Positions 91 to 33,223 of a stretch of 64,000 bases of DNA are shown here, one piece after another. Made by a program: the position numbers and the translations under genes. A model generated the notes under the pieces. The model worked only from the letters and a program-made list of their open reading frames with translations, did no database searches and had not been told where the DNA came from. How positions within the stretch are numbered: position 1 is the first letter of the stretch; every line of letters begins with the position of its first letter. This stretch comes from Selaginella moellendorffii (lineage: Eukaryota > Plantae > Lycopodiophyta). The stretch lies in assembly GCF_000143415.4 (NCBI RefSeq), contig NW_003314278.1, positions 2,128,408 to 2,192,407 of the forward strand. Direction: 5' to 3'.

Positions 91-118
91 TTTAGGGTTT
101 AGGGTTTAGGGTTTAGGG
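91..118 (+). repeat. (TTTAGGG)4 plant telomere-type repeat inside the transposon intergenic region
   Basis: Four exact TTTAGGG units; degenerate equivalent at ~24706-24731 in copy B. Confidence 0.85.
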
Positions 119-1590
119 TTTAGCAATTCAGTAGCTTGATAAACATGCAAATACAGAACTTGATGCAAAATCCTTGGATATGTCACAATGCCCTTAGGAC
201 CATAAACACATTTCAATAGAGAGGGTCCTTTCATTTCATAACTCCTTACGTAGATCTTGGTGAAACCAGAGTTAGTGAAGTTGGTTTCTTGTGATCCCGC
301 ATCTGATTGTGATGTCCCTTTGTAGTGTCGATGGAAAGGTCAATGCACACCAAACTGTAGAATCTTGGAGCAAAATAACGGTCGGATCTATGGCAAATGC
401 CCCTGAAACATTGTAAGGCTCGTGTGGTCTCATGTGGTGTCCGATCGAGATGCTTCTTTGCAGGGTCATCAAGAAGGACATTGTATACCATTCTGTAAAA
501 TCTAGTTGCGATCTAACGGTTGGATCTCCAGGAAACTCAAAACAATCTCGCGCGTGTCAGAATATTCTAGGAATATACTCCTATGTGCTCCTGAAAATGG
601 CATGCGGCCCCACGCCATTCAAGAGATAACGCCAGATGACGCCGAGCATTTTTTGGTGCATTTTTTGGGATCAAAATTGCATGAGCCCACATGCTTGAAC
701 GTCACATCAAATCCTCTGACAATTTATTTAGCTGAACATCTGGCATTTTTGGAAATACAAGATGCTTTGGAATATCCAATCATGCATGGTATAAATATAG
801 CGAGGGTATTAAATGATATCCCAATCATGATCTTTCTTTTGGATTTCGCGTGCATGCAGTCCGAGGAATGATGACGTTGCGGATTTCTTTTGGATTTCAC
901 GCATGCGCGCGCCGATCCAGAAATTAATGGTGGCGCCCAAGTCCGAGAAATGATGACGTGGCGGGATTACCAACCGTCGTGACATTTCGCGCGTGTGAGG
1001 TTAGGTTTTGCATTTTGCTTCGTACTCGCGCTCGCACACTCGCGCTCGCATCGCGCTCCCACTCGCGCTCCCACTTCTCTACAGGTTTCTCGTGTGCATC
1101 GGCGTCCACTCGCGCTCGCATCGCGCTCGTGTGCATCGGCGTCCACTTCAAGACACACCCAGTTTGTAACTTCGCCGCCAACTCCGCCGCCCACTCCGCC
1201 ACCCACACGCAGCCCACTTGGCGTCCCGGGAGATTTCAGCGCCACTCTCCAACTGTAAGTGGCAGAGTAGCCTTGCTGCTACAATCCGCTGCACACACAG
1301 TGCACATTCGCCAGCGAGTCCGGTTGTCACGCCTCCATTCGGCTTCAAATGGTAAGTCTTTTAGGCCAAGTAAAAAATGGCATGAGGCCACATGCCATTC
1401 AGTAGCAACATTGGCATGCACCGATTGGGCTCTCGAGTGCAGTCCGGTTACAGATGGCGTGTAGCCTCACGCCATCTTAGGATGCAGCCTCAAGACATCT
1501 GATGCAGTGGTGAATGGCGTGTGGCCTCACGTTATTTCCAGCTACTAGCTTTTCATCTGTCAGCTCTAATTGTTGTGCATTTCTGAACAG

Positions 1591-2248
1591 GCGAGGAATT
1601 GCGTTCTTCTTCCAGCCACTGTCAATGTGGATGCAGAGAAGGGGGAGGAGCTCACCAGTTGGACTTTCGGGATAGAAGGCGAGGATCTGAGGCTGTACAA
1701 CACAGATGGTGGGAGAAAAGAATGCATGGGGATCCTCATCCAAGTGACAGACACTCCATGCAGTTCCATGCAAGAATATGGACTGGCACTTGTGGTAGAG
1801 ACAGCGTCTGCCTTCAAGATCCACCTTGCACATCCTAGCGGCTTCCCGGAGGGGGGCAGCGGCTATGAGGAATTCCTAGAGGGAGCTAGGGAGAGGTTGT
1901 CCAGGAGGCCCACAATTTCAAAGACGCTGCGGGTCTATGAAGATCACATGGAATCCACGGACCTCACCTACGGCGATGTTCAAAAACTATATTCCAACAT
2001 TGAGCCGTTGAGAGTGACTCCAGTTCGCGAAGCAAAGGGGAAGGGGGTCGATCTGGAAACTACCTCAAAGCAGAAAAGGGTGGTCAAGCTCAAGCCGACG
2101 TCCGACTCTCCTGCTCCAAAAAAGAAGCTACTCAGTGATGCCATTGCCTCGGGTTCGAACACTACACCCACCAAAAAGAAGAGCCGCAAAGAGCAGAAAG
2201 AGCAAGAAGAGGCAGCAAAAATCGTCGCAGATAATAGTACTTGTTACT
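1591..2248 (+). CDS. Partial duplicate of the 5' coding exon of the transposon accessory gene (runs into N gap)
   Basis: Protein identical to that encoded at 4419-5068 (ARNCVLLPAT...DNSTCY), preceded by a ...TTTCTGAACAG acceptor. Confidence 0.7.
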
Positions 2249-2878
2249 NNNNNNNNNNNNNNNNNNNNNNNNNNNNNNNNNNNNNNNNNNNNNNNNNNNN
2301 NNNNNNNNNNNNNNNNNNNNNNNNNNNNNNNNNNNNNNNNNNNNNNNNNNNNNNNNNNNNNNNNNNNNNNNNNNNNNNNNNNNNNNNNNNNNNNNNNNNN
2401 NNNNNNNNNNNNNNNNNNNNNNNNNNNNNNNNNNNNNNNNNNNNNNNNNNNNNNNNNNNNNNNNNNNNNNNNNNNNNNNNNNNNNNNNNNNNNNNNNNNN
2501 NNNNNNNNNNNNNNNNNNNNNNNNNNNNNNNNNNNNNNNNNNNNNNNNNNNNNNNNNNNNNNNNNNNNNNNNNNNNNNNNNNNNNNNNNNNNNNNNNNNN
2601 NNNNNNNNNNNNNNNNNNNNNNNNNNNNNCAAAGGAATATGGCAATAGGCTAGCAGGGGCCAAAGATGGCATGAGGCCTCATGCCATCTTGATATACACA
2701 CAGCTGCAGGCAAGTAAAAACATACATGACAATACGCTAGCCATGAAATTGCAAGGGCCCAAGATGGCATGTGGCCTCATGCCATTTCTAAATGTGGTCC
2801 TAAACCATTCCATGGTGAACATACCAGGAAGCACAAGTGCCGAATATCAAGAGGAAGCGGTAGCCACACCAAAGACAG

Positions 2879-3010
2879 TGCCGCTCGCAACACCGCAACT
2901 ACTCGTAGCGCCGCTCGCAACACCGCAACTGCTCGTAGCGCCGCTCGCACAAACTGCCACTCGCATAAACTGCCGCTCGCAATGGCGCTCGCAATGCCGC
3001 AACCGCTTGT
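2879..3010 (+). repeat. 30-bp tandem repeat (GCCGCTCGCAACACCGCAACTRCTCGTAGC) with degenerate GCTCGCAA units
   Basis: Direct inspection; also present at ~23777-23907. Confidence 0.75.
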
Positions 3011-3805
3011 AGACGCATAAACCACAGCTCACAACGCCGCTTACACAAGCAGCGCTCACTGCGCTCAGCGGAACCAAGAACACGGCGCACAAAAATGATA
3101 GACCTAGGAATGAGTTCGAGAATTCAAAAATAACACACGCTTGAACGTCACATCAAATCCTCTGACAAACCAGATCTTATGATTCCTCTGACAAATTTCA
3201 AACTGAGTAGCTTCTAGACTTTGCTGTCGGAGGTTGAACTTTGTCACATCATGTCCTTGCCTCGATCCAGCTGTGCCATGTCAGTGATTCGAACTTTGCC
3301 ATGCCATGTCAGCGATCCGCGCCAAGATTATTCGCCGTGTAAAGGAATAATTATGCTGTGTGTGTACGTCCATTTATGGCAATATAATGCCACATGCCAT
3401 TCAAGAGATAACGCCAGATGACGCCGAGCATTTTTTGGTGCATTTTTTGGGATCAAAATTGCATGAGCCCACATGCTTGAACGTCACATCAAATCCTCTG
3501 ACAATTTATTTAGCTGAACATCTGGCATTTTTGGAAATACAAGATGCTTTGGAATATCCAATCATGCATGGTATAAATATAGCGAGGGTATTAAATGATA
3601 TCCCAATCATGATCTTTCTTTTGGATTTCGCGTGCATGCAGTCCGAGGAATGATGACGTTGCGGATTTCTTTTGGATTTCACGCATGCGCGCGCCGATCC
3701 AGAAATTAATGGTGGCGCCCAAGTCCGAGAAATGATGACGTGGCGGGATTACCAACCGTCGTGACATTTCGCGCGTGTGAGGTTAGGTTTTGCATTTTTC
3801 TTCGT

Positions 3806-3970
3806 ACTCGCGCTCGCACACTCGCGCTCGCATCGCGCTCCCACTCGCGCTCGCATCGCGCTCCCACTCGCGCTCGCATCGCGCTCCCACTCGCGCTCCC
3901 ACTTCTCTACAGGTTTCTCGTGTGCATCGGCGTCCACTCGCGCTCGCATCGCGCTCGTGTGCATCGGCGT
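3806..3970 (+). repeat. GC-rich ~23-bp tandem repeat (CACTCGCGCTCGCATCGCGCTCC), copy-number variable between element copies
   Basis: Two more units here than at ~1024-1140; diverged version at ~25634-25765. Confidence 0.8.
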
Positions 3971-4418
3971 CCACTTCAAGACACACCCAGTTTGTAACTT
4001 CGCCGCCAACTCCGCCGCCCACTCCGCCACCCACACGCAGCCCACTTGGCGTCCCGGGAGATTTCAGCGCCACTCTCCAACTGTAAGTGGCAGAGTAGCC
4101 TTGCTGCTACGATCCGCTGCACACACAGTGCACATTCGCCAGCGAGTCCGGTTGTCACGCCTCCATTCGGCTTCAAATGGTAAGTCTTTTAGGCCAAGTA
4201 AAAAATGGCATGAGGCCACATGCCATTCAGTAGCAACATTGGCATGCACCGATTGGGCTCTCGAGTGCAGTCCGGTTACAGATGGCGTGTAGCCTCACGC
4301 CATCTTAGGATGCAGCCTCAAGACATCTGATGCAGTGGTGAATGGCGTGTGGCCTCACGTTATTTCCAGCTACTAGCTTTTCATCTGTCAGCTCTAATTG
4401 TTGTGCATTTCTGAACAG

Positions 4419-7400
4419 GCGAGGAATTGCGTTCTTCTTCCAGCCACTGTCAATGTGGATGCAGAGAAGGGGGAGGAGCTCACCAGTTGGACTTTCGGGA
4501 TAGAAGGCGAGGATCTGAGGCTGTACAACACAGATGGTGGGAGAAAAGAATGCATGGGGATCCTCATCCAAGTGACAGACACTCCATGCAGTTCCATGCA
4601 AGAATATGGACTGGCACTTGTGGTAGAGACAGCGTCTGCCTTCAAGATCCACCTTGCACATCCTAGCGGCTTCCCGGAGGGGGGCAGCGGCTATGAGGAA
4701 TTCCTAGAGGGAGCTAGGGAGAGGTTGTCCAGGAGGCCCACAATTTCAAAGACGCTGCGGGTCTATGAAGATCACATGGAATCCACGGACCTCACCTACG
4801 GCGATGTTCAAAAACTATATTCCAACATTGAGCCGTTGAGAGTGACTCCAGTTCGCGAAGCAAAGGGGAAGGGGGTCGATCTGGAAACTACCTCAAAGCA
4901 GAAAAGGGTGGTCAAGCTCAAGCCGACGTCCGACTCTCCTGCTCCAAAAAAGAAGCTACTCAGTGATGCCATTGCCTCAGGTTCGAACACTACACCCACC
5001 AAAAAGAAGAGCCGCAAAGAGCAGAAAGAGCAAGAAGAGGCAGCAAAAATCGTCGCAGATAATAGTACTTGTTACTATTCCAACAATGTATATACAATCG
5101 ACGTGAGCCGTATCGACATCCAAAGCAAATACAACCACAGGCTAGTATCTGATGAGTGGGTGGAGAAACTGAAGCAGAAGATGCTGGCAAGTCCAGTAAC
5201 ACCCGACATCGCAGACGTGATCCCCTACTACNNNNNNNNNNNNNNNNNNNNNNNNNNNNNNNNNNNNNNNNNNNNNNNNNNNNNNNNNNNNNNNNNNNNN
5301 NNNNNNNNNNNNNNNNNNNNNNNNNNNNNNNNNNNNNNNNNNNNNNNNNNNNNNNNNNNNNNNNNNNNNNNNNNNNNNNNNNNNNNNNNNNNNNNNNNNN
5401 NNNNNNNNNNNNNNNNNNNNNNNNNNNNNNNNNNNNNNNNNNNNNNNNNNNNNNNNNNNNNNNNNNNNNNNNNNNNNNNNNNNNNNNNNNNNNNNNNNNN
5501 NNNNNNNNNNNNNNNNNNNNNNNNNNNNNNNNNNNNNNNNNNNNNNNNNNNNNNNNNNNNNNNNNNNNNNNNNNNNNNNNNNNNNNNNNNNNNNNNNNNN
5601 NNNNNNNNNNNNNNNNNNNNNNNNNNNNNNNNNNNNNNNNNNNNNNNNNNNNNNNNNNNNNNNNNNNNNNNNNNNNNNNNNNNNNNNNNNNNNNNNNNNN
5701 NNNNNNNNNNNNNNNNNNNNNNNNNNNNNNNNNNNNNNNNNNNNNNNNNNNNNNNNNNNNNNNNNNNNNNNNNNNNNNNNNNNNNNNNNNNNNNNNNNNN
5801 NNNNNNNNNNNNNNNNNNNNNNNNNNNNNNNNNNNNNNNNNNNNNNNNNNNNNNNNNNNNNNNNNNNNNNNNNNNNNNNNNNNNNNNNNNNNNNNNNNNN
5901 NNNNNNNNNNNNNNNNNNNNNNNNNNNNNNNNNNNNNNNNNNNNNNNNNNNNNNNNNNNNNNNNNNNNNNNNNNNNNNNNNNNNNNNNNNNNNNNNACGA
6001 GGACTTGTGCACGACTCTGAGAGCTCGTGCGCTATTGAAGGATTGGATCTTCGAGCAAGTGGCCGTGGAGAGGGTGAGCATCGACACCACGCAAGAGATG
6101 ATGGAAGCGCTGGAGTTGTCAAATGAAGACATCGACGAGTACGTGAAGGGGGCCCCCAAGTTCATCGATCTGCTGCGGGATGCCACGAAAAGTAAAGCTG
6201 AGAAGTTGGATCAGTATCCAAATTTCATTAAGATTGATGTCGACCGCCGGCTTCAGAAACAGCTCGACCCCGCAGCAGAGGCCTATCGAGAACCTTACCG
6301 GGTATACTTGAATTCGGATGAGGATCAAAGGTGGAGGAGCATCGTTTCCCGCGGAGATGAGCAGGTCAAGAACATCTTTTGTGTGATGGACTTCACAAAC
6401 GAGGAGATCACTCATGCAGACGAAGTCAGCTCCATCATTGACTTAATGGTGGGACTTGCGGAGGTGGAATCTTCAGTCCACTATATGATCTACGACTCCG
6501 AATCCTATCACAAGTTCTGGAAGGCCTTGAACGAGGTGAAGGCTCGGTTGAAAGGCAAGGAGATGCGGGAGATCCATGGGATAATGGCTAAGAAGAAGAT
6601 ACCGACGAATGTCCGCATCTTCACACTCGCCCTTGTTATTGGTCCTGCAGCAGAGTGGGACTGGAGTGACTTCCCAGCTTCGTTCAACAAGGCCAATCGA
6701 ATTGATCTGAGGGAGGTCAATTTACCCGTGCCTGAGGAACTGAAGACGGCTATGGAGCTTTCGAATCCAAAGAAAGCTCCAGGTGCAGCATGGGAAATGC
6801 TCAGCTGGGTCTTCAACGCAATAGCGGGTGGGTCATCTGCTTCCGACTCCAAGGGCAAATGCGTTGTCGAGTACAACTGCGGCGGACTATTCTTTCGAGC
6901 CGCACTACTCAAGGGTGTCCCTTGTGTTGCGGTGACAAACTCCATTGAAGAGATGACTTCAATGGAGCATATAATTACAGTTGCCAAAGAAAAACAGTAT
7001 CTTCTCTGCGAACCTGGTGAGTACACACTTTAAGTTTAAATGTTATCTCACAAGCTCTGTATGCAGGAGCATGGCCACCCCCAGATGCTGAAACGGCGTT
7101 AACAGCTACTTTTGAAGATACCCATGTTGGGCCGAGCTCACAACCTGCACAAGGTAAGGTCACGTGAGGCCTCACGCCATTTTGATTATAGATCGTTGTG
7201 AATATTTAGACACGAGGACTGAAAAGCGCACTGGTGGCGCATCGAAGAAGGACAAACAGAAAAGCAATAGGAAAAAAGGAGGTACAAATTATATTTGCAA
7301 TGGCGTGTGGTCTCATGCCATTCCTTGCAGGAGAAACTTCTTCAAAGGCAAAACAGGCAAGCACCAGCCAAGCTCAAACTGACAGTGGTCATAAAAAGCG

Positions 7401-9840
7401 AAAGCACGTTGGACAGTCGTCGAGATCAGAGGCGTTTGATTCGAAAAGGAAGAAGGGCAACGAAAAGATGATAGGTAATGCCTCGCGGTTATGGCGTGTG
7501 TGCTCATGCCATTCATTGCAGATCAAGGGCTGAGTGAAAGCAGGCAGTCACCACCTCATGACTCAGATTCCTATGGCGGACTCCCCTTCCCCAATCTCAA
7601 TGGAGAGGTACAATGGATGAGGGAAGCTTTTCAAGGCAGGGCCACGTTTTTCTCATCTCGTCGTCTTCGAAGGGTGCAAGAACGTGCAGAAACCATGTTA
7701 AGACAGTCGGGTGAGGATACGGTCCTAGGTCACGCACTAAAACAAGCTATGGATGTCTTGTATTTTGAGATGGAGACTCGGCCAGATGATTTTCCCAAGA
7801 TGGTCCTGGAAGAACAAGCCATCCAGCCTGAGCAGCCTATGGAAGAAATGCAGGAGGGGGATGAGGAGCCAGAGAAAGATAATGAGCAAGAAGAGCAGAA
7901 GGACGAAGAGGAGGACAAAGAAGAGGAGGACAAAGAAGAGCAGGACGAAGAGGACTTGGATGGTCCTCACAATGGTGACGATCACAATAACGACGACGAC
8001 GATGATGACGACGATGGCCAGCCTGAGGTGGCCAAAGAGCGGCGGAGGAAGGTCATACAAGACAAACCATCAGGTAAATAATAATACATCCATTCCTAAC
8101 CTTTTACCATTTCTAACATTGTCCATGTAGGTCGCAGAGCAAATGGTAAGTAGAGATTATTCAGTTGAATTTACAAACTCTAGCCTTTAGTGTCGAGGAA
8201 GGATAGTGCCAAGCAAGGGTCGAAACGTATGTCCAATCCTTCAGAATCAGCAGTGCGCTCAAGTGATATCGGTCCTAGTTCCTCAATAGCAGTTGATGGT
8301 AAATACAGTATAGTCGATTCAATGTGCTAATGAGTTTGTTTTTAGTAGCACGGGAGGATACCATCTCAATCGAAGGGAGATATTTGGACATGCATATGGA
8401 TCCGCCAGTGGACTCTACTTGGCTGCAAGAGTCATCAGAGCTGGTGGAGGCCACTATCCATATCAACGCCAAGCAAGCTGACCACGCTCCACTTGATGCT
8501 GCCCATACCACTGAGTCAATCTTGTCCACGTATCCAACTGACGGTGACCAGGCGCCATTGGACCCACATGAGGCCGCCCCAGCCGCCGAGCCGGTCGTAT
8601 CCTCATTTCCAATGGACTCAACGTGTGCCCAATCGTCTGACTACGCGCCGTTGGAACCTCCCTACACCGCCCCTACTGCTTGTTCGGTCATGTCCACTTT
8701 GCCAACGGAGGCACCAGCTGAAATGGCGTGTGATCACACGCCATCGGAACCACCCCATGCCACTGTTGAGCCAGTTGTACCAGAGTCTACAGCTGAAATG
8801 GCATGTGCCCACACGCCATCGGATGCGATTGACCCCACATTGCAGAGGAGAGTATTTCCGCCCTTCACGTTTCCTCGACCAAAACCCTCTCAACGACCAT
8901 CGGGAGCAACATTCGCTAATATTGTAGATGGTAAAATTGACTTGTACCATTTTTTATGCTGACGCATTTCATTTCAGAGTCACGGCGAAGGTACTGTATC
9001 GTTTTTGATCTGAACGGTGTCCTTTTCTCCCATGAGCGTGGCTCGTCCTCGAATGTCATTGCACCCTCCAAAGCCTGTGGTCGCAAGTTGGTCAAAAGAG
9101 ACAGATTCACATTAATCACACGGGAGAAACTGCGGGATCTAATAATGACCATGCGACACTTAAAACAGAGGGCCGGGTTCAATTTGCAATTGGGAGTTTG
9201 GACATCCATGATGCGCCACAATGCATTAACGTTGCTACAGATGATGCACGATCAGACGCGAGTAATATTACCATTTGACTTTCTCCTAACGCAGGAGGAT
9301 TGCTTGACTATGGTCCATGTGAGGGGTAGCAAGCCCATCTTCGTCAAGCCAGAGGCTGTAGTGATGAACCGGACTGCTAGCTCAAGTGAAATCCTCATCA
9401 TCGATGACTCGCCGATTAAAACTGCAGCGAACACGCACACATATGCAGTGCACCCCATCTCTTGCAGTATGGAAACTAGGGAGAAGAAACCGTATGTTCT
9501 GGGGGACCTTGCAAAACGGCTTGGAGCGATGGTGATAGAGAACCGGCCAGTCCAGGAGGTGGCTGCAGAAATCAACCAAATGGCAGATGGAACGGTATAT
9601 CAGAAGCCATTTGATCGGACAGACACCAGTCATCATTTATGGCATGTATATTGTCTAGCCAAGCACTATCCGCATCTCCATAATCTGCTCAACCGGATGG
9701 GTTCTTCGACCACTGAACATGAGCGTGGACATATTAGAGAAGAGATGGCATTACTATTGGGTTTAAATCCTGATAGTGTGGAGAGTGATGAAATTCCAAG
9801 ATTATTGTATAGGCGTTGGAGGCAAAAAATAACAGTCTGA
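4419..9840 (+). CDS. Transposon accessory protein (spliced, ~1600+ aa): ParB/Srx-like domain + degenerate beta-class N6A/N4C DNA MTase fold + basic/acidic/Pro-rich linkers + FCP1/SCP-like HAD phosphatase domain
   Basis: The ORF pieces join in frame across GT-AG introns at 7017-7066, 7154-7209 (or -7191), 7282-7330, 7475-7521, 8074-8130, 8146-8190, 8299-8345 and 8931-8977; stop at 9838-9840. Motifs: IDVSRI..HRLVSDEWVEKL..FYAVSGQHS (ParB-like; the SGQHS part is read from copy B because A' has a gap there), NPKKAP..GKCVVEYNCGGLFFRAALLKGVPCVAV (MTase motif X/I/II-like), IVFDLNGVL..VWTS..FVKP..LIIDDSP (HAD/FCP1). The 5' exons and start codon are uncertain (possible ATG 4177). Confidence 0.75.
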
Positions 9841-19170: not shown

Positions 19171-20277
19171 AATGATGCTCTTGCAAGGTTTCCTGTTACT
19201 AACAATGGCACTATTGGCTTTGAGAATGGGGACGTTTACAGAAGGGGTTATAGACTCTAGAGAGAGGATCTCTTTCGGAGCTACAGCAGGGGCTAGAGTG
19301 GGAGTCCCAATGATCGGCAGAGTCGTGGATGAAGTCGGTCTCCTAAGCTCACGGGCGATTCCTTGACAGCTATGGAGTCGCCAACGATGGTGGCTAGGCG
19401 AGATCATTCGATCGATCAGGGACGCAAACACAGCAGCTCATTTCTTTTGAGAACCAACGGAGCGCACCAAAAGTTTGATTTTGAACCCTAAAAGCTCAAT
19501 CAACGGCTCAGATTTAGGTTCGCTTAACATATATGTATGTTTTTAGGGTTCTAGCCACAAGCTTTATTTCGTTAAAGTGGGATTTATTCAGTAAAATGGG
19601 ATTAGGTACAAATTTTCAAGTATTTGAAAATGACGTGAAATTATATATTTTTTGTCCAGGGGCTAGACATATCTGGGACATGGTGACTAGCGCAGTGACT
19701 TTATGTCCAGACTAAGTCCATCTGGTTGTATAATAAATCTCATTGTCAAGGTGAACAAGCCGAATCTGAAGCTAAAGAAGAGCGATGGCATGCGCGCACA
19801 CACTATTTGTTTGCTCATTGAGCGTGTGGTGAGCTTTCCAAGATGAACGTCATTCCTATTAGCCAAACATATAACTTAATGATGAGAACATTTAGATATT
19901 ATTCAATGTTATCTTTTTCTAACGAATCTAATTGTGAAGGTGTAGCAAGAGGCATTGCTAGTCTGGAGAAGTCATTTAACTCATTTGACCCTTAGTGTAT
20001 TTTCATGAAACTAAATAACATTCATATTATTAAGGAATTTCTCTAGTACCTTTTTTTTACGACATAGAGGCTTGCATTTCTTTCAAAGGTGATTTAGTAA
20101 AAGGCCTGAGGGCACATGCCATTCTATTTCTCAGACCGGTATTAAGATATACTAGTGCAAAGGGAAAAAGGTATTTGGTGATCAAGTAAATGGCATGAGG
20201 GCACACGCCATTATAAGCCTAAGCGCTAGTGGACACCTCCTTTTTGGTGTCACGCCTCACGCCATCACGCCATGCCA

Positions 20278-23200
20278 TCACGCCTCCTCTGATTCAGATT
20301 CGGATTGTTCACCTTGAAATAAAATACATTAAAAACTTAGTAAAGGAATATTAATGAATCTCACCTTGAACCCGGGTTATGAATGCTCTTGCTGCATCTC
20401 TTGCATGGTCTGGCAAGGTGATGGTGGCACTCTGCTTCCGCATCCAACCATGCACAACATTATCCACCGATATGCTCATGCTGGGATCCCTTGGATTCAG
20501 CACCTATCTCTTTTCTAGGCAATCCTTCGTATATCCGGAACTTGGCTTGAACCACTCCACAGTTACATTGAAGGAGTTAGTTTCCGCGTCCTCCTCTGCA
20601 TCAGTGATGCAGCGCCCCACCCATATCATTTGTTTTTTATTACTGGGTCTGACAAGCACGACCATTCCTTTGCAGACCTGTACTAGATTGAATGCTGAAT
20701 CCGGCTTCTTGTTCCTCGGCCCATAATAGTGATCCTCAACATCGTTATCTGTCACTGCATTTCCAGAGGACATTGTTCCGCTACTATCTGGTGCTCTAGG
20801 TTCTGGCCAAAAGGACTCTTCCAATTCTTCATATACAACCGGCCCATTTTGGATAGCAGATATAATCTTCTCCCAGTATTCGAGCAAAAGCTTGCACCTC
20901 TTAAAATAGGATTCTCCACCAAACACCAACCCCCTCTTCCAGAAGGCAATATGCTGTCTAATCCCGGCCACTATACTTTCCTGGTCTTTGAGTCTATCCG
21001 GGTGCATCGGCCGTGAGGAATCCTGAGGAATCATAGGTTCCCCAGTTATGGGATCTCTCTTGAAGAGTTCAATGCCATCCACTGGCAGCCACAGTGTGTC
21101 CCATTCTCTCATCTTGTACCTCATCACTAGAGCACCGTCACGCATGCTGAAATGAAACTGAAGAGGCTTGGAGTGGCCAATCAGCATTTTGGATCCGTCC
21201 CTGATGTAGCCTCTTACAAACCCCTTAAAGTCTTGAACCTCTGTCACAAGTGCAGCTTCAACAGTGCCTTTGATGCAATTTTGGAATTCATCGTAGAGTT
21301 GTGGGAGGGTGAGGACATTGGATCGCCGGAGGGACTCTGCCAGGTGACTGAACATGGCATCAACGCCTTCATGAGTGTGCCCAACCATAAGAAAGCCAAG
21401 TGTAACCGTTTCAAATATGCCTTTGGCAACAAGCATCGCCAAGTACGCGAAGACGTACATGTTTTTGTTCTCACTGCCAGCATTGTCTGTTTGGAGCAGA
21501 AGATGGGGTGGAAGGCCACATCGGCCGCAAGAACTTCCTTGAGATTTTGCTTCGTTTGGATGAGGCTGTGCATTCACCGGGCGACCAGCCTCATCGGAAT
21601 GGCATGAGGCCTCACGTGATAACCCTACAATCTGACGGCCAACATATTCACTGGGATGGCATGGGGCCCCACGCAATACTGCAAGCCTTTGCTCCTCCTC
21701 CAGCTGAACCCTGTATGGGGTTCGATCGACAAGGGCCTTATGCAAGGGTTGGCCGTTCAGCTCAGTCTGCGCACTTTGCAGAGACCTTAAGTGTTTTGCT
21801 AGGGACGCAATCATCATGTTTGCACCCCCACCACCCCATAGAGGTACAAAGAAGTTCCCATAGTTCTGGGCACCATGCCCATGAGCGATTATGCCAAACA
21901 GAGACACAGGCAGCTGCATGGATGAAGAGATTGCCTTGGGGGCAGGATTGAGTTGAGGTAAGCACGTCTTTTTCTGGTCCATTTTGTCGTGGATGATGCA
22001 GAGGTAAGAGTTAGGTCTCTCCATGGAGAGAATTCTGTTATGATAATATGCAGTCCTGCAGCTTCTCTGCTCGATGTTGTGGTCGAGCCGCCTTCTAACC
22101 AACGTCTCTCACTCTTGAGCGCTGCAAGAATTCTTCGACAAAGCCATTTTGATAGCAGTGCACTCGTCACACTTTGAAAAGCTGGAGTACTTTCCTATAC
22201 TCACATCCCTGAACCTGTTGCTCCACAATCTACTAAATCTAGATTGGCTCAGCTTCCTGTAGCCATTACTCTGGAGTTCCCAATTCACATCTTCCAATAT
22301 GGCCCCCTTGGTATACATGGAAGGGAGAACTCGTTGGGTGTCTCGTGTTCCATCTTCCAAGAGGCGGGTTTTATGTGGTTGCTGCTCGCTACATGTCTCG
22401 ACAAACCTCTTGAAGATTGCCTCTCCATATACAACATGACCCTTAGTTTTGTGTGTACCGTCGTTCCCATGGACTGCCTGTTGAACCCTTTGTTCTTCGA
22501 ACTCAGTTTTGATTCTGTAGAATGTGCTTTGAGAGACTCCATAAATGATTCTCCATGCCTTCATGCAGACCAAACCCCTCTGGAAGACCATGCCCCCCAC
22601 CTGATGTTCTGAAGCATCAACAGATGACCGTAATGCCTCATACACAAAATTGCGAGCTGCCTTCTAGGACAATGTCTTGTATCTTGCTCTCTCCTCTTCA
22701 ATAGCATCTCAATCAGCATGTTGACAGCACCTCCTCTTGCAACAAGCAACTGTCGAGACCATTCGAACCTCCATCGCCATTTTCTGCCTTTTCGGTTCGT
22801 TGCTCAGATCCCTTTGGCTGCGCTGTAGGAAGGTATACTTTCTTTTCCCATGAAGAGATGTTCTGTCATCAGTTGTAGTGGTGTTTGATTGTGAATCCTT
22901 CACATTCTCAAACACTAAATGCCTCAATTTCCACCGCACAATGCTTCCAATAGTCAGACTGTTTTCTTCTGTGTCAACAACCTTTAAAATCGCAACTCCA
23001 ATATTATCCCAGCCCAATTCTTGATTAGCAACCGCATCTCTTGGATCGACAACTGTGGCTAAGCCCTCAGCTACCACCTCCCCCTCGGGGTTGTTTAGAA
23101 ACACCTTTTCCTGAATCCATGTAGCACGGTTCTTAAGATCCACGGAGGGAACATGCGTCGCACTTGCGCTGTCCCCAACATTTGCTTTCTTCTGCAGATT

Positions 23201-23419
23201 TTTCAAGGCAACAACAACATTTACCCCGACGACCATCTCTCCTCGTTCAATAGCGACCACATTCCCATCGAAGACAGTCTCTACTGATACAGCAGCATTG
23301 CCTTCCCCAAGCCTTTGACAGTGTATAACAAAGTTCCGATCCATAGACACAAGGGTCCCTTTTGCAACTCTCTTCCCACCATTCAAAATCTAAACCTTTT
23401 CCCCAACCCTGAAGGCCAT
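20278..23419 (-). pseudogene. Transposase (~1000 aa) with five in-frame nonsense codons: two N-terminal Tnp1/En/Spm-like repeats, Cys-rich region, RNase H-fold DDE/D core, C-terminal SH3/Tudor-like beta domain
   Basis: ORFs 23386-22709, 22645-22109 and 22102-20504 are all in one frame from ATG 23419. Motifs: IIHDKMDQ, LQTDNAGSENKN, FLMVGHTHEGVDAMF. Terminal intron 20364-20313, then GEQSESESEEA*. Confidence 0.85.
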
Positions 23420-26400
23420 TCTGAAAGTGCAGAAAAGAAGTTAAGACCATACAAAAAATGATTGGAGAATGGCATAAATCATAACATACCAAATAGCATG
23501 AGGCCACATACCATTATTCAAACATGCTATTGACACCCACGTGAAATTTCGCATTCACAAAATTGGCATGAGGCCTCATGCCATCTTGATATACACACAG
23601 CTGCAGGCAAGTAAAAACATACATGACAATACGCTAGCCATGAAATTGCAAGGGCCCAAGATGGCATGTGGCCTCATGCCATTTCTAAATGTGGTCGTAA
23701 GCCATTCCATGGTGAACATACCAGGAAGCACAAGTGCCGAATATCAAGAGGAAGCGGTAGCCACACCAAAGACAGTGCCGCTCGCAACACCGCAACTACT
23801 CGTAGCGCCGCTCGCAACACCACAACTGCTCGTAGCGCCGCTCGCACAAACTGCCACTCGCATAAACTGCTGCTCGCAATGGCACTCGCAATGCCGCAAC
23901 CGCTTGTAGACGCATAAACCATAGCTCACAACGCCGCTTACACAAGCAATGCTCACTGCGCTCAGCGGAACCAAGAACACGGCGCACAAAAATGATAGAC
24001 CTAGGAATGAGTTCGAGAATTCAAAAATAACACACGCTTGAACGTCACATCAAATCCTTTGACAAACCAGATCTTATGATTCCTCTGACAAATTTCAAAC
24101 TGAGTAGCTTCTAGACTTTGCTGTCGGAGGTTGAACTTTGTCACATCATGTCCTTGCCTCGATCCAGCTGTGCCATGTCAGTGATTCGAACTTTGCCATG
24201 CTGTGCCAGCGATCCTCGCCAAGATTATTTGCCGTGTAAAGGAATAATTATGCTGTGTGTGTACGTCCATTTATGGCAATATAAGGCCACACACCATTCA
24301 AAGAATAATGCTAGTCGAGCATTTTTTGGTGCATTTTTGGGTTCAAAATTGCATGAGCCCACACGCTATAAAGTTTACCTATACCAAAAATAGAAACAAC
24401 TTTATTTACTTGGGAATTTAAGTGGTTGAGGCATTTTTAAACTTACAAACACATGCCCTACTTACATTCCTTTGGTTGCTTAAAATTCAAAAATATTATA
24501 AACCTTTCTTTTTGCATTTTCAATGTTTTCAATTATGGTTTTTGATTTTCGCAGGACCAGTCTAGTAATCTATTTGCATCCTGTCATGTTTATAGCTAGC
24601 TTTCATTTGTCCTCTTCGCTAGCCTAAGATACATCTGCTCGGCATCTGCCTCTTACAGCATTTGCCCAAAAAGGGCATCTTTCTTCACGCAGCATTTGCC
24701 ACATGTTTAGGGTTTAGGTTTTAGGGTCTAGCAATTCAGTAGCTTGATAAACATGCAAATACAGAACTTTATGCAAAATCCTTTGATATGTCACAATGCC
24801 CCTAGGACTATAAACACATTTCAATAGAGAGGGTCCTTTCATTTTATAACTCCTTACGTAGATCTTGGTGAAACCAGAGTTAGTGAAGTTGGTTTCTTGT
24901 GATTCCGCATCTGATTGTGATGTCCCTTTGTAGTGTCGATAGAAAGGTCAATGCACACCAAACTGTAGAATCTTGGAGCAAAATAACAGTCGGATCTATG
25001 GCAAATGCCCCTGAAACATTGTAAGGCTTGTGTGGTCTTATGTGGTATTCGATTGAGATGCTTCTTTGCAGGGTCATCAAGAAGGACATTGTATACCATT
25101 CTGTAAAATCTAGTTGCGATCTAACGGTTGGATCTCCAGAAAACTCAAAACAATCTCGCGCATGTCAGAATATTCTAGGAATATACTCCTATGTGCCCCT
25201 GAAAATGGCATGCGGCCCCACGCCATTCAAAAGATAACGCCAGATGACACCGAGCATTTTTTGGTGCATTTTTTGGGATCAAAATTGCATGAGCCCACAC
25301 GCTTGAATGTCATATCAAATCCTCTGACAATATATTTAGCTGAACATCTGGCATTTTTGGAAATACAAGATGCTTTGGAATATCCAATCATGCATGGTAT
25401 AAATATAGCAAGGGTATTAAATGATATCCCAATCATGATCTTTCTTTTGGATTTCGCGTGCATGCAGTCTGAGGAATGATGACGTTGCGGATTTCTTTTG
25501 GATTTCACGTGCATGCGCGCGGCGATCCAGAAATTAATGGTGGCACCCAAGTCCGAGGAATGATGACGTGGCGGGATTACCAACCGTCGTGACATTTCGC
25601 GCGTGTGAGGTTAGGTTTTGCATTTTGCTTCGTACTCGCGCTCGCATCACGCTCCCACTCGCGATCACGCTCACATTCGCGCTCATCTACCTTCTCTACA
25701 GGTTTCTCGTGTGCATCGGCGTCCACTCGCGCTTGCATCACACTCGCGCTCGCATCGCGCTCGTGTGCATCGGCGTCCACTTCAAGACACACCCAGTTTG
25801 TAACTTCGCCGCCAACTCCGCCGCCCACTCCGCCACCCACACGCAGCCCACTTGGCGTCCCGGGAGATTTCAGCGCCACTCTCCAACTGTAAGTGGCAAA
25901 GTAGCCTTGCTGCTACGATCCGCTGCACACACAGTGCACATTCGCCAGCGAGTCCGGTTGTCACGCCTCCATTCAGCTTCAAATGGTAAGTCTTTTAGGC
26001 CAAATAGAAAATGGCATGAGGCCACATGCCATTCAGTAGCAACATTGGCATGCACCGATTGGGCTCTCGAGTGCAGTCGGGTTACAGATGGCGTGTAGCC
26101 TCACGCCATCTTAGGATGCAGCCTCAAGACATCTGATGCAGTGGTGAATGGTGTGTGGCCTCACGTTATTTCCAGTTGCTAGCTTTTCATCTGTCAGCTC
26201 TAATTGTTGTGCATTTCTGAATAGGCGAGGAATTGCGTTCTTCTTCCAGCCACTGTCAATGTGGATGCAAAGAAGGGGGAGGAGTTCACCAGTTGGACTT
26301 TCGGGATGGAAGGCGAGGATCTGAGGCTGTACAACACAGATGGTGGGAGAAAAGAATGCATGGGGATCCTCATCCAAGTGACAGACACTCCATGCAGTTC

Positions 26401-26964
26401 CATGCAAGAATATGGACTGGCACTTGTGGTAAAGACAGCGTCTGCCTTCAAGATCCACCTTGCACATCCTAGTGGCTTCCCAGAGGGGGGCAGTGGCTAT
26501 GAGGAATTCCTAGAGGGAGCTAGGGAGAGGTTGTCCAGGAGGCCCACAATTTCAAAGACGCTGCGGGTCTATGAAGATCACATGGAATCCACGGACCTCA
26601 CCTACGGCGATGTTCAAAAACTATATTCCAACATTGAGCCGTTGAGAGTGCCTCCAGTTCGCGAAGCGAAGGGGAAGGGGGTCGATCTGGAAACTACCCC
26701 AAAGCAGAAAAGGGTGGTCAAGCTCAAGCCGACTGTGAGACACAAAATCCCTAGGCCCCAAAGTGGAGCCGGAAGGGCGCCACATGGTAGTGGCCGAAGC
26801 GAGAGCCAAACGAGCGTAACACGTTTGGACCAGAAGCTCCGACTTGAAAAGTCAAGAGCGGGAGTGGAACTCCCAACGAAGTGCTCGAGGAACGAGCACG
26901 AAGCGAGCAAAAGGCAAGGCTCCAAAAAGGGACCCAAAAGGACCAACACATGAGACGTGGGAGT

Positions 26965-27348
26965 GTCCGAGATGGACTCGAGTTAGAGTCCGAAGTGGAG
27001 TCCGAGATGGACTCGAGTTGGAGTCCGAAGTGGAGTCCGAGATGGACCCGAGTTGGAGTCCGAAGTGGAGTCCGAGGTGGACCCGAGATGGACCCGAGTT
27101 GGAGTCCGAAGTGGAGTCCGAGATGGACCCGAGATGGAGTCCGAGATGGAGTCCGAGATGGAGTCCGAAGTCGAGACCGAGACCGGGACCGAAACCGGGA
27201 CCGAGACCGAGACCGAGACCGAGATCGGGACCGAGACCGAGATCGGGACCGAGACCGAGACCGAGGCCGAGGCCGAGACCAAGCCCGAGCCCGAGTCCGA
27301 GTTCGAGTCCGAATCCGAGTCCGAGTCCGAGTCCGAGTCCGAGTCCGG
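26965..27348 (+). repeat. Compound minisatellite in the 5' LTR (GAGATGGAGTCC-type 11-mers, GAGACC/GAGTCC hexamers)
   Basis: Direct inspection; source of spurious low-complexity ORFs. Confidence 0.85.
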
Positions 27349-30300
27349 AGCCTGAGAGGGTGAAAGCCCAAAGCGTTCGTCTCCCAGATCCTGGGGGGTT
27401 TGGTGAGCCCCAAAAGTATAGTAGGGGGAGGACTGCAGTGAAGCCAGTTTGGCCAGGAAAGGCCAGTTTGGCCCAGGAAGGCCAGACCCAGTTTTGGGTG
27501 ATGAGCTGCCCACTGGGAAGTCCAAGACTAGAGTGAACACAGACCGACAAGCGGGGTAGCTTGGTGAAGTGTTCAAGAGCCGGCTCTAGTTCCCCCGGGA
27601 GATCGACTGGCCGATGCTCCCAGTCCAAGTGTGGGTGGCACTACCTACTTGGATACCAGGTGTGGCTCAACGAAACCTCGCTCTAAGCCCATGGCTAGAG
27701 CACCTAAAGGCGAAAGGCGGGGAGAGTACCTAGGTGGCTCGCGTAAGGCCACGGTGTTCCGAAATGTTGTCCCAAAGGCCCAGACTGTGGAAAGGAAGAG
27801 GAGCAGTCCTCTGGGGTAGTGACCAAGGACACAGTCGTGTGGTGAGGAAGTCCCAGAGGACCGTGGGACTTAGTGGTCGGGCCTGTGGGTCTCGGTCCAG
27901 TGGCAGTGTTGGCAAACACGGCCAGGGGCAGAAAGGGACTTAGTGGGGACTGACAGAGCGATATTGGGGAAGGCTATTCCCCTTGTCGGTGGGCATCCTA
28001 AGGATGCTAAGGAGTGGATCTGAGATGACCACTCACGGATGGTTTGCCTAGTCTTGGGGAGCCAAGACTGTGATGCAAGGGGTATTGGACTACCAGTGTG
28101 GCAAAGGTGAATGGGCATGGCCTTAGCGTAACGGGCCGAGATGTCAGTGGTACCTTTGGGTGTCGGTCATGGGATCGGACACGTGGAGCACTTGGACCAA
28201 GTGCAAAGGTTGAGTGGCATGGATGCCATTCTCGGGGCTAGCAAGCCCCAAGTCCTAAATGGGACTTATGGAGGTTGTGAATGAGACTCCTCCAAGTGGT
28301 CGGAGGTGTGGTTAAGTGACTAAAGTAAAATGGAAAAATTAGTCGCTTACAATTTGGTATCGGAGCTGTTCCTTAGTCTGACTTTTATTGGTGCTCAAGT
28401 ATATCACCACTGGTGTTGGCAACGGAAGGTCCAAGAAGTGGGCCTATCCTTGAGGAGTAGTAGGTCGGGAAGACATGGCTCTCCATTACAGTTCATGTGT
28501 GGACTTGTAGACAAGGTGGTGGATAGAAAAGGGGGCCAATAATGGAACGACTTTGGGATCTTGGGAACAGTGCAAGGTTTTCCTCATTGAGTTGAGGAGG
28601 TGATCCAGATGAGCATTTGACTCAGCAAACGGGCTAATGTAGTTGGGGTAAACAACTATAGTTGGGATCACGGGGAAGATAGAGACTCCAAAAACAATAA
28701 AGGAGTCACGGGTTTATCCTCACATGGTTGAGGCTGGTGCTCATGAAGGTGAGACCGGAATGGATGACCGTGAGAGGTCAAGTATGGATGAGGACACGAG
28801 TCCTCGAAATGGTAGCCGAGGCTACCTCTAATAAATGCTGGAACAACCCAAGGAGTTGGGGGTGTATTAAGTGGATGAGTTGGTATTCTCATCACATGGA
28901 CAAGTAGTCCTAAGGGGTAAAGGTTGCCCCCAGGGAACAAATCAAGTGACGGAGTAACACTTGTGAAAATAGTCCCTTTGAGTAGGACAGGAATGCAAGA
29001 AGTGTATTCCAGTGAGCTAGTGCCTCACAAGTAGGACCTTACGGGTCGGTGGATTAACCAAGTCCAAAACTGCTAGACGACTCAACTAGAGTCAAGGGAT
29101 GGTCCTAAAAGGACTGATAGAAGCATTTGGATTGAGGTGCGTTGTACCCCACAAAGGATGGGGGGGGATCATAGGATCCAAGGATGAGAACAGAGAGTAT
29201 TTCATCGATGACAAAATGTGCCATGCTAAAGTTATGGGAAAGGTGTTCCCAGAAGAAAACAACTTTGACATAAAGTTGTGTGTGACCTCTATGGGGCAGT
29301 GCTAACAGATGGTTGGCATGAGAAAGAGTGGTGTTGGTCTTGGCAAAGACTTAGACACGAAGGGAAATGTCATAGAGGTAGGCTCGTGGAGCCGATGGTG
29401 TGAAGACACCAAATGTGCCAAGGTGTGATACCTTGAGGCTATGATGGTGGGTTCATGAGAACCCCTTGCTAAAGGAATCCCAATGGAAATGGGAATGGCA
29501 TAGCCTAAGCTGCAGAGCATGCAGTTGGAGTGTGGTGACCCAGATAATGATGGAGGTGTGAAAGCACCAAGCAATGAGTTGTAGGACTTGACAACTATGA
29601 GGCAACTAAGCAAGAGGTGCAAAATAACTGATTAAACGGGTAGAAGGTAGCTACCCAAGACTTCTAGTATAGGGAAGTCGGATATACCCTTACGGGGGAT
29701 AAGTTTCTTATGTTGCGATATAGTAAGTCAATGTCATAAAAGGAAATACTCATTGTCAAGAAAGCCATCATTGGGACACCCGAACACTCTAGAACACTAG
29801 AAGGTGGTGTTTGATATCGCGAGGGCAATGGATAAAGCCCAAGGGACTAAGTCCCTAGCGAATGATGGATAGAAGGTGCTATCCAAATGTCCAAGGTTGC
29901 GGAGACAGGAGAGGACTGTCTACCCAAGTTGGACAAAGCCAAAAATGGAATTTTGGCAAGGCTAGTGATGGGCATGTAAAGGCCCATAAGCAACAATGTA
30001 ACCCCAGTGTGTGGGATTATAAGCTGAGCATACCCGGATTGAGGAACCACTCCCTGGGCTATTGGGTAGGTTCATCCCTAAGAATACTTGCTAAGGCATG
30101 ATAGAAAGTGCAAAGCTATCCTCCTGGTCTGGAGGAGAATGACCGAAGGAAAGGTGTGAAGCCAAAGGCAAGTAGTGTTGGGATGGAACTGAACCATAGA
30201 AATCAAAGGGCATATCCAACAGTGGTTATGGAAGTTGGGAGTGGAGAATCAAGAGGGTGCTCGAGGATGTTGTTGCTAGCAACCGTGATGCCATGGAGAG

Positions 30301-32676: not shown

Positions 32677-33223
32677 GTCCGAGATGGACTCGAGTTAGAG
32701 TCCGAAGTGGAGTCCGAGATGGACTCGAGTTGGAGTCCGAAGTGGAGTCCGAGATGGACCCGAGTTGGAGTCCGAAGTGGAGTCCGAGGTGGACCCGAGA
32801 TGGACCCGAGTTGGAGTCCGAAGTGGAGTCCGAGATGGAGTCCGAGATGGAGTCCGAGATGGAGTCCGAGGTGGACCCGAGATGGACCCGAGTTGGAGTC
32901 CGAAGTGGAGTCCGAGATGGACCCGAGATGGAGTCCGAGATGGAGTCCGAGATGGAGTCCGAGGTGGACCCGAGATGGACCCGAGTTGGAGTCCGAGATG
33001 GACCCGAGATGGAGTCCGAGATGGAGTCCAAGATGGAGTCCGAAGTCGAGACCGAGACCGGGACCGAAACCGGGACCGAGACCGAGACCGAGACCGAGAT
33101 CGGGACCGAGACCGAGATCGGGACCGAGACCGAGACCGAGGCCGAGGCCGAGACCAAGCCCGAGCCCGAGTCCGAGTTCGAGTCCGAATCCGAGTCCGAG
33201 TCCGAGTCCGAGTCCGAGTCCGG
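32677..33223 (+). repeat. Compound minisatellite in the 3' LTR, expanded relative to the 5' LTR
   Basis: Same units; the 3' LTR is 1781 bp versus 1618 bp for the 5' LTR. Confidence 0.85.

Follow-up and report, generated by a model that had tools for sequence, protein, structure and literature searches.

Does a high-copy plant transposon carry a DNA methyltransferase fold that has lost its chemistry? The question is raised by a 242-residue domain encoded at 6290–7017 (+) in the window, the 64,000-nucleotide stretch of Selaginella moellendorffii DNA that we analysed and to which all positions refer. A preliminary description, made from the letters of the sequence, had proposed a cryptic, probably dead beta-class N6A/N4C DNA methyltransferase (MTase) fold at 6290–7010. 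On balance, we lean towards the reading that the domain derives from a ParB–MTase fusion, namely from its beta-class amino-MTase half (PF01555 type), and is now catalytically dead.

The gene runs from a ParB/Srx-like domain through a helical linker to the 242-residue domain, and on through disordered basic and acidic linkers to a NIF/FCP1-like HAD phosphatase-like domain. Its upstream part in the ORF list (4398–5231, +), which probably belongs to the same long exon as the 242-residue domain, closes with 54 residues from the start of the ParB/Srx-like domain. An assembly gap of 765 N (5232–5996) conceals the remainder of the ParB-like domain as well as the junction with the exon at 5999. Directly after the gap, the translated frame is open from 5999 to 7033 (+), and a GT donor at 7018, rather than the stop codon at 7033, closes the exon. 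In this copy (copy A), the frame is open across 339 codons. The helical linker (5999–6289, +) lies N-terminal to the 242-residue domain; it has no family match in Pfam, and a low-confidence AF2 model places helices at residues 2–70. Downstream of the domain, a predicted 49-nt GT..AG intron (7018–7066, +) is followed by predicted short exons at 7067–7153, where the frame resumes, 7192–7281, 7331–7474 and 7532–8063 (together spanning 7067–8063, +). These exons encode the low-complexity linkers, first basic and then acidic, and their Pfam matches consist only of low-complexity noise. The terminal exon (8978–9840, +) matches Pfam family PF03031 (NIF) with an E-value of 4.2e-06, and its 27.0 bits exceed the gathering score of 21.8.

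The domain had been described as transposon-borne, and this holds: it is part of a cargo gene, behind the ParB-like domain, and the carrier, a DNA transposon present in very many copies, has a DUF7869 transposase. The transposase ORF of a second element in the window (copy B) lies at 20504–22099 (−; Pfam PF25273 DUF7869, E 2.9e-42), and the second copy of the 242-residue domain lies at 35552–36277 (+), with 94% amino acid identity. A tblastn search of the 64-kb window with the three domains found no further paralogues, and none of the literature we searched describes this gene in a plant transposon. Copy B is decayed, with stops (one at exon codon 333) and a frameshift. Copies A and B differ by 19 non-synonymous and 7 synonymous codon changes; 78% non-synonymous changes are expected, which indicates neutral divergence. 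The frame is kept in most genomic copies, which are very numerous, with single-base deletions in a minority of contigs (one run only). In the single run labelled RNA, we found no spliced joints, and its contigs are unspliced. The neutral divergence, the damage to copy B and the unspliced contigs are what one would expect if the domain were non-functional, decayed coding sequence without a current role. Nevertheless, we consider this very unlikely, given the long open frame of copy A and its retention by most genomic copies. Moreover, any transposon copy should drift neutrally once inserted, which is uninformative about the active source element. The stretch 6290–7017 is coding, and what it encodes is a real domain within a transposon cargo gene of several exons.

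All peptides quoted in the preliminary description are present in the translation of 5999–7033 (+), and in the order given. The first is IFCVMDFT (6374–6397, +), whose end overlaps DFTN (6389–6400, +), the tetrapeptide set against motif IV (DPPY). VHYMIY lies between this peptide and NPKKAP (6764–6781, +), which is set against HPTQKP, and WEMLSWVFNA precedes GKCVVEYNCGG (6854–6886, +), set against motif I. LFFRAALLKG (6887–6916, +) and VPCVAV (6917–6934, +) follow and are set against helix A and strand 2 (motif II), respectively. The description had called the catalytic and SAM-binding motifs eroded, and indeed no intact one is present in the domain. DFTN does not match the (D/N/S)PP(Y/F/W/H) pattern of motif IV, the sequence VVEYNCGGLFF is read where motif I would show DPFxGSGTT or FxGxG, and VAVTNS lacks the acidic SAM contact of strand 2. 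Since DFTN stands for DPPY, EYNCGG for DPFxGSG and a threonine for the ribose-binding acid of strand 2, the domain is, judged by its residues, most likely not a methyltransferase. The sole match to [DNS]PP[YFWH] in the whole gene is SPPH at 7548. We rejected it as a displaced motif IV, since its place is a disordered linker and only this copy has it, SPPP being read in the family majority and in copy B.

A read comparison lists family-majority changes at six positions within 6290–7010 (6308, 6686, 6695, 6836, 6922 and 7008), with 43 weaker variants beyond this list. Since none of the listed changes falls in DFTN, NPKKAP or EYNCGG, the degenerate motifs are probably a family trait and not the result of decay in copy A. 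A motif IV site free of listed family-majority variants would also suit an active enzyme with a non-canonical D-hydrophobic-x-D/N motif, be it an unusual methyltransferase or a SAM-fold enzyme with other chemistry. However, position 4 offers no aromatic residue for stacking on a flipped base, and the contacts proposed for motifs I and II are changed as well, in an alignment that is itself unproven; an active enzyme is thus improbable from the residues at hand.

Database searches placed the domain in no family. Pfam gives no match to PF01555 even at an E-value of 10, and the gathering score is not reached. Searches of the domain against PHROGs, NCBIfam and PADLOC (hmmscan, E 10) and against the PDB (phmmer) returned nothing relevant. 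A phmmer search of 1.84 billion representative proteins found no relative; its lone match, a thrombospondin (TSP1)-repeat protein, is spurious, the same 45-residue stretch being matched ten times. Word-indexed searches, run for both the domain and the ParB exon, yielded nothing, and neither did tblastn against plasmids or a scan of JGI metagenomes. Weak matches of the domain to the RIOX1 winged helix, SLT, GapS6a and HamA were judged to be noise. The last of these (PADLOC, E 0.0066, 13.8 bits, domain residues 36–113) would be compatible with a PD-(D/E)xK-type nuclease-like fold related to HamA/DUF1837. This is hardly credible, given that the score is at noise level for the number of searches and that such a fold appears neither among the Pfam matches nor among the ESM-Atlas neighbours of the domain.

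We also assembled our own reference set for PF01555 from 50 non-redundant phage MTases. The profile built from all 50 members (hmmsearch) gives the domain −2.3 bits, a score equalled or exceeded in 1137 of 2000 shuffles; positive controls score 153–160 bits and phage and plasmid ParB–MTase fusions 150–160 bits on PF01555. Profile–profile alignment, put forward earlier as a check, does not bear the assignment out: hhalign in local, global and low-mact modes returns a probability of 0.1–0.2% and P of about 0.3–0.5, and its best path departs from the motif mapping of the preliminary description. That mapping is colinear with the permuted order IV–VIII, target-recognition region, X-I-II-III; the ordered-block score is at chance level. 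With a seven-block PSSM from 48 PF01555 proteins, the real sequence scores −13.8; 1000 shuffles average −13.0 (sd 7.1), and 519 of them are equal or better, so that by this measure the motif resemblance does not rise above chance. At the sites of the mapping, the motif IV block ranks 79th of 328 positions, the HPTQKP block 17th of 324 with a negative score and the motif II block 129th of 328 with −13.1 bits. The motif I block has its best position at the mapped site (1 of 324), yet its score there is −5.1 bits.

Structure prediction, also suggested beforehand, did not confirm a Rossmann MTase fold. From single sequences, AF2 reached a pLDDT of no more than 35–36 for the whole exon as well as for the domain taken by itself, and Foldseek comparison of the poor model with the PDB retrieved generic alpha/beta fragments, which are noise. 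Both runs show the same elements at low confidence, strand-helix-strand-helix-strand followed by helix-helix-strand-strand, the order expected for beta4-alphaD-beta5-alphaE-beta6 ... beta1.

It is the protein language model, and no other type of evidence, that supports the fold assignment, and on this basis the domain may adopt an MTase fold. When the domain alone is submitted to ESM-Atlas, the top three clusters are unnamed and score 0.94, with 183–189 of 256 features shared and a recognition of 2843. PF01555 is carried by 79 of the 100 nearest clusters, the named PF01555 matches scoring 0.86–0.89 with 130–149 shared features. A 400-residue ORF of copy B leads to the same family. The predicted model of the rank-1 cluster (pTM 0.61) aligns to PF01555 models over 192–231 residues, with TM scores of 0.53–0.59 by hit and 0.38–0.76 by match, and its matches include a 536-member ParB_N+N6_N4_Mtase cluster. 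By the tool's own account, its hits are leads only, notably at scores below 0.9, and a third of shuffled proteins also obtain ten neighbours from the same family; shuffled proteins seldom reach 0.94 together with high recognition and over 170 shared features.

The upstream ParB/Srx-like domain can be seen in full only in the decayed copy B (34374–34787, +; ESM-Atlas), and tblastn with this exon matches 5070–5231 of copy A at 98%. In ESM-Atlas, the exon scores 0.97 (200 features) with a eukaryotic cluster and 0.93 with ParB_N clusters, and the model of its rank-1 cluster matches ParB_N models with TM scores of 0.58–0.65. ParB_N (PF02195) is absent from its Pfam matches, and our own ParB_N profile, built from seven phage fusions, gives −1.3 bits, which is chance level; genuine phage ParB–MTase fusions are likewise missed by Pfam ParB_N at E 0.001. 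PADLOC reports a weak match of the exon to MTase_II PDLC03334 (E 0.021). VSGQHS occupies the place of DGRHR, the GxxR or DGxHR-type box. The assignment of a ParB fold to this exon is indirect. ParB_N followed by PF01555 is a known phage architecture, and our reference set contains real fusions with the same domain order.

An unrelated alpha/beta domain, lineage-specific or of another fold, would explain why the HMM, profile and PSSM tests are all at chance, why 1.84 billion proteins contain no relative, why AF2 confidence is so low and Foldseek finds generic fragments, and why the named PF01555 matches fall below the 0.9 line of ESM-Atlas. The motif order and the language-model neighbours would then be coincidental or generically Rossmann-like. 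We regard this explanation as possible but rather doubtful, because the top ESM-Atlas matches are of the kind rarely seen with shuffled proteins, PF01555 had already been named by an independent reading beforehand, and the adjoining exon leads independently to ParB_N, a known fusion partner of PF01555. The proposal of a beta-class MTase fold is supported in part, with the ESM-Atlas neighbours and the ParB_N-like domain upstream in its favour and every classical sequence test at chance.

Under descent from a ParB–MTase fusion, the source of the module would be a fusion of the phage or plasmid type, and its MTase half would have passed beyond profile detection; the domain has most likely diverged past the reach of sequence profiles. 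Next to the ParB-like domain, it could now act as a scaffold or bind DNA without catalysis, and its putative target might be the element's own dispersed 22-bp palindromes, whose sequence reads ATGGCRTG-N6-CAYGCCAT. The binding of DNA or modified bases put forward in the preliminary description likewise stays at the level of inference.

Phage and plasmid ParB_N–N6_N4_Mtase fusions (PF02195 + PF01555; examples are L040, L047 and L055) resemble the plant gene in having a ParB-like domain, a helical linker and then the MTase position, with a core of similar size. They keep DPPY, HPTQKP and DPFxGSGTT, whereas the plant domain has none of the three and no PF01555 score. The plant gene also differs in being eukaryotic, multi-exon, transposon-borne and extended by the NIF phosphatase-like domain. 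DIRS1 retrotransposon polyproteins contain an MTase-like domain that is predicted to be inactive, having lost its catalytic and substrate-binding residues, and for which a binding-only role has been proposed (Iyer et al. 2015, PMC4738411). Like the plant domain, for which the fold is a candidate, it is a transposon-encoded amino-MTase fold predicted to be inactive. However, it belongs to the PCIF1-like clade of group 2, is not permuted and resides in a retroelement, and the likeness carries no claim of kinship.

Active beta-class N4C MTases that retain TSPPY are encoded by host genes in Marchantia (MpDN4MT1a/b) and bdelloids (N4CMT). They would share with our candidate the PF01555 type and acquisition by a eukaryote, and the Marchantia pair demonstrates that such proteins can occur in land plants; the Selaginella domain differs in lacking a TSPPY-type motif and in being transposon cargo. 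Chlorophyte and chytrid proteins that join ParB-HTH to a Dam-type MTase stem from phage ParB-Tls (Iyer et al. 2015, PMC4738411) and likewise combine a ParB-type module with an amino-MTase in eukaryotes. In contrast to our candidate, they belong to the M.EcoKI/TaqI-like group and not to the beta class, and no land-plant or transposon-borne example is reported. DUF3723 (PF12520) is a conserved cargo gene of Starships, the large fungal DNA transposons. Pfam DUF3723 does not match the plant protein, but the second-nearest ESM-Atlas cluster of the ParB-like exon carries it (0.96, 195 features), a lead only, which concerns the upstream domain and not 6290–7010.

If the fold is true, a eukaryotic DNA transposon took up a phage-type ParB–MTase module that lost its chemistry, gained a CTD-phosphatase-like tail and, in a land plant, then multiplied to a very high number of copies. 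It would be the second case, together with DIRS1, of transposons retaining a dead amino-MTase fold, and a concrete candidate for the recognition by a transposon of its own DNA. It would also illustrate that a domain invisible to HMMs can still be placed by language-model features, a placement that needs structural confirmation before it is trusted.

The first motif of the NIF-like domain is DLNG. Since this is not DxDx(T/V), phosphatase activity is doubtful on present sequence grounds. In a broader and unlikely scenario, several transposon families in Selaginella moellendorffii would share the ParB-like clamp, a beta-class MTase fold with a conserved, non-canonical D-hydrophobic-x-D/N motif and the CTD-phosphatase-like cargo, all acting jointly on the 22-bp palindromes of their own element. 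Such a system, derived from a phage ParB–MTase, might mark or shield the element's own DNA or its transcription, with a new activity or ligand in the MTase fold. Two of the 22-bp palindromes lie within the gene itself, at 7300 and 7491, in introns between the short linker exons.

The candidate methyltransferase domain (242 amino acids, window 6290–7015, +) is encoded in a 344-codon open frame at 5999–7033 (+), which starts directly after an assembly gap (N run 5232–5996). Translation of this frame yields all the peptides cited in the preliminary description, in the order stated there. The stop at 7033 is bypassed by predicted splicing from a GT donor at 7018 to an AG at 7066, which carries the frame on into 7067–7153; further short exons are predicted at 7192–7281, 7331–7474 and 7532–8063 (all +), followed by several small ones. 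The contigs of a single run labelled RNA all cross the predicted introns unspliced. In some DNA-run contigs, 59–63 nt around a palindrome at 7491 are missing (7483–7549); the skipped segment is offset from the predicted intron 7475–7531, so it is absent from some genomic copies. The terminal exon (8978–9840, +) carries a NIF/FCP1-like HAD domain, matching PF03031 with 27.0 bits (cut-off 21.8). It starts with FDLNGVL, making the first HAD motif DLNG and not DxDxT, and judging from this motif the phosphatase may be inactive too.

The gene is the cargo of a repeated element. A second copy (copy B), with approximately 97% DNA identity to the first (copy A), lies at roughly 34.2–39.1 kb, and a third, partial copy lies at 97–2248. 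Copy B spans the sequence hidden by the gap in copy A and reveals, upstream of the exon, a ParB/Srx-like stretch (34374–34787) with VSGQHS at the place of the DGRHR of ParB. A frameshift near 34790, together with stops near 35049 and at exon codon 333, marks this copy as decayed. Of the 1017 exon bases, 27 differ between the copies; 19 of the codon changes are non-synonymous and 7 are synonymous (78% non-synonymous expected), and the divergence is neutral decay after insertion. This pattern would suit a domain that is itself decayed, non-functional sequence; the frame of copy A is open throughout the domain, and we consider this explanation very unlikely.

The preliminary description proposed a probably dead beta-class methyltransferase fold. 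In Pfam, PF01555 (N6_N4_Mtase) does not match the exon even at E 10, and no relevant family matched the domain in PHROGs, NCBIfam or PADLOC. Nor was a relative of the domain found by phmmer against the PDB, by word-indexed protein searches, by tblastn against plasmids or by a metagenome scan. A phmmer search of 1.84 billion representative proteins found no genuine relative; its sole match, a thrombospondin-repeat protein, was judged spurious. We built a reference set of 50 non-redundant PF01555 proteins, including seven ParB–methyltransferase fusions, seeded with E. coli YhdJ and viral relatives. Three of its members, used as positive controls, reach 153–160 bits on the Pfam model. Against a profile of this set, the plant exon scores −2.3 bits, which 1137 of 2000 shuffles equal or exceed. 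The HMM–HMM comparison called for in the preliminary description did not confirm it, with an hhalign probability of 0.1–0.2% (P 0.24–0.53) and a forced long alignment that departs from the proposed motif mapping. A test for seven conserved blocks in order gave −13.8 for the native sequence and a mean of −13.0 (sd 7.1) for shuffles, of which 519 of 1000 scored at least as high; at the proposed positions, the motif I block alone is top-ranked, yet its score is negative. By classical sequence measures, the resemblance to methyltransferases is thus no better than chance. These results would fit an unrelated alpha/beta domain, an explanation that the language-model neighbours described below speak against but that we regard as a real, if lesser, possibility.

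It is language-model neighbours alone that suggest the methyltransferase fold. An ESM-Atlas feature search with a 400-aa copy-B frame placed PF01555 clusters at 0.81–0.83 among the 100 nearest, which we took as a lead only. The domain alone (6290–7015) gave a sharper result, with three unnamed clusters at 0.94 (183–189 of 256 features shared), a recognition of 2843 and PF01555 in 79 of the 100 nearest clusters. According to the tool's calibration, a score of 0.9 is attained by 4–10% of shuffled proteins and 0.95 by 1%; 170 shared features occur in only one or two of ten chance matches. The model of the nearest cluster (pTM 0.61) matches PF01555 models over 192–231 residues, with a TM of 0.53–0.59 by the hit and 0.38–0.76 by the match; a 536-member ParB_N + N6_N4_Mtase cluster is among them. 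A nuclease-like fold, a kind that none of these neighbours represents, appears the least probable explanation.

Queried alone, the upstream ParB-like exon lies near eukaryotic unnamed clusters (0.95–0.97) and ParB_N clusters (0.93); its nearest-cluster model superimposes on ParB_N models with a TM of 0.58–0.65, and PADLOC gives a weak MTase_II match (E 0.021). Queried separately, the two domains therefore point to the two partners of a fusion known from phages, in the correct order, and it is chiefly for this reason that we rank methyltransferase descent above its rivals. Since genuine phage fusions likewise lack a Pfam ParB_N match at E 0.001, the HMM miss says little about the ParB half; it weighs more for the methyltransferase half, whose genuine members score very high on PF01555. 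The nearest clusters of the ParB-like exon are from Cnidaria and Mollusca, and one Ascomycota neighbour contains DUF3723, the gene conserved as cargo in fungal Starship transposons, which hints at a ParB-like cargo family common to large DNA transposons across eukaryotes.

Structure prediction, also suggested in the preliminary description, lent it no support. No relatives were found in the collections searched, and AlphaFold2 was therefore run without an alignment, on the whole exon and on the domain alone, with low confidence both times (pLDDT 35.5 and 36.4); a Foldseek search of the PDB with the second model returned nothing at E ≤ 0.001.

Under the proposed mapping, motif IV is DFTN, motif I is EYNCGG and strand 2 ends in threonine where an acid is expected. 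A scan of the whole gene for (D/N/S)PP(Y/F/W/H) matches once, at SPPH (7548) in a disordered linker, a chance change private to copy A; copy B and the family majority have SPPP. Listed family-majority differences from copy A in 6290–7010 (6308, 6686, 6695, 6836, 6922 and 7008; 43 weaker variants are not in this list) all fall outside the proposed motifs, and the degeneracy is therefore probably a family trait. An active enzyme would need a non-canonical motif, and we think it unlikely. The catalytically dead part of the original proposal agrees with the gene's lack of a canonical motif IV and its fold with the neighbours; every profile and motif test stayed at chance. Most likely, with modest confidence, the domain would be a relic beta-class fold that no longer transfers methyl groups and is retained beside the ParB-like domain to bind DNA or act as a scaffold. 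A precedent is the methyltransferase-like domain of the DIRS1 retrotransposon, which is predicted to be inactive and binding-only (PMC4738411).

A candidate target, which we infer, would be the element's own 22-bp palindrome, ATGGCRTG-N6-CAYGCCAT. It occurs 21 times in the window (597–8798 and 20190–39122), always inside element copies and never in 6290–7010; its sites fall in short predicted introns (e.g., 7300 and 7491), and those at 8723 and 8798 are part of a coding exon, where they are translated as EMACDHTPS and EMACAHTPS. The architecture of the cargo gene is unusual and testable. No plant transposon bearing such a gene is described in the literature searched, which is weak evidence given its partial coverage.

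The copy-B element also has a transposase frame (DUF7869, E 2.9e-42). In two DNA runs from this organism, 16,728 and 46,949 contig pieces align to 3.9 kb at ≥85% identity, indicating a very abundant, mostly young family. Copy B has an insertion of ∼8 kb (26040–34220) within its cargo gene; the ends of the insertion share 300-nt direct repeats (26734–27033 and 32446–32745) and 12-nt tandem repeat blocks. Within 97–5076, two stretches (607–2248 and 3389–5076), 2.8 kb apart with an N gap between, both correspond to the 5′ portion of the element, which reflects a partial copy, nested or in tandem, or else misassembly. The DNA of the window is that of a land plant, and host genes lie next to the elements, with an AP2-domain frame found by domain search (46107–47816, −) and three PPR genes (49783–51897, −; 52633–55503, −; 55738–57984, +), two of them with E motifs.
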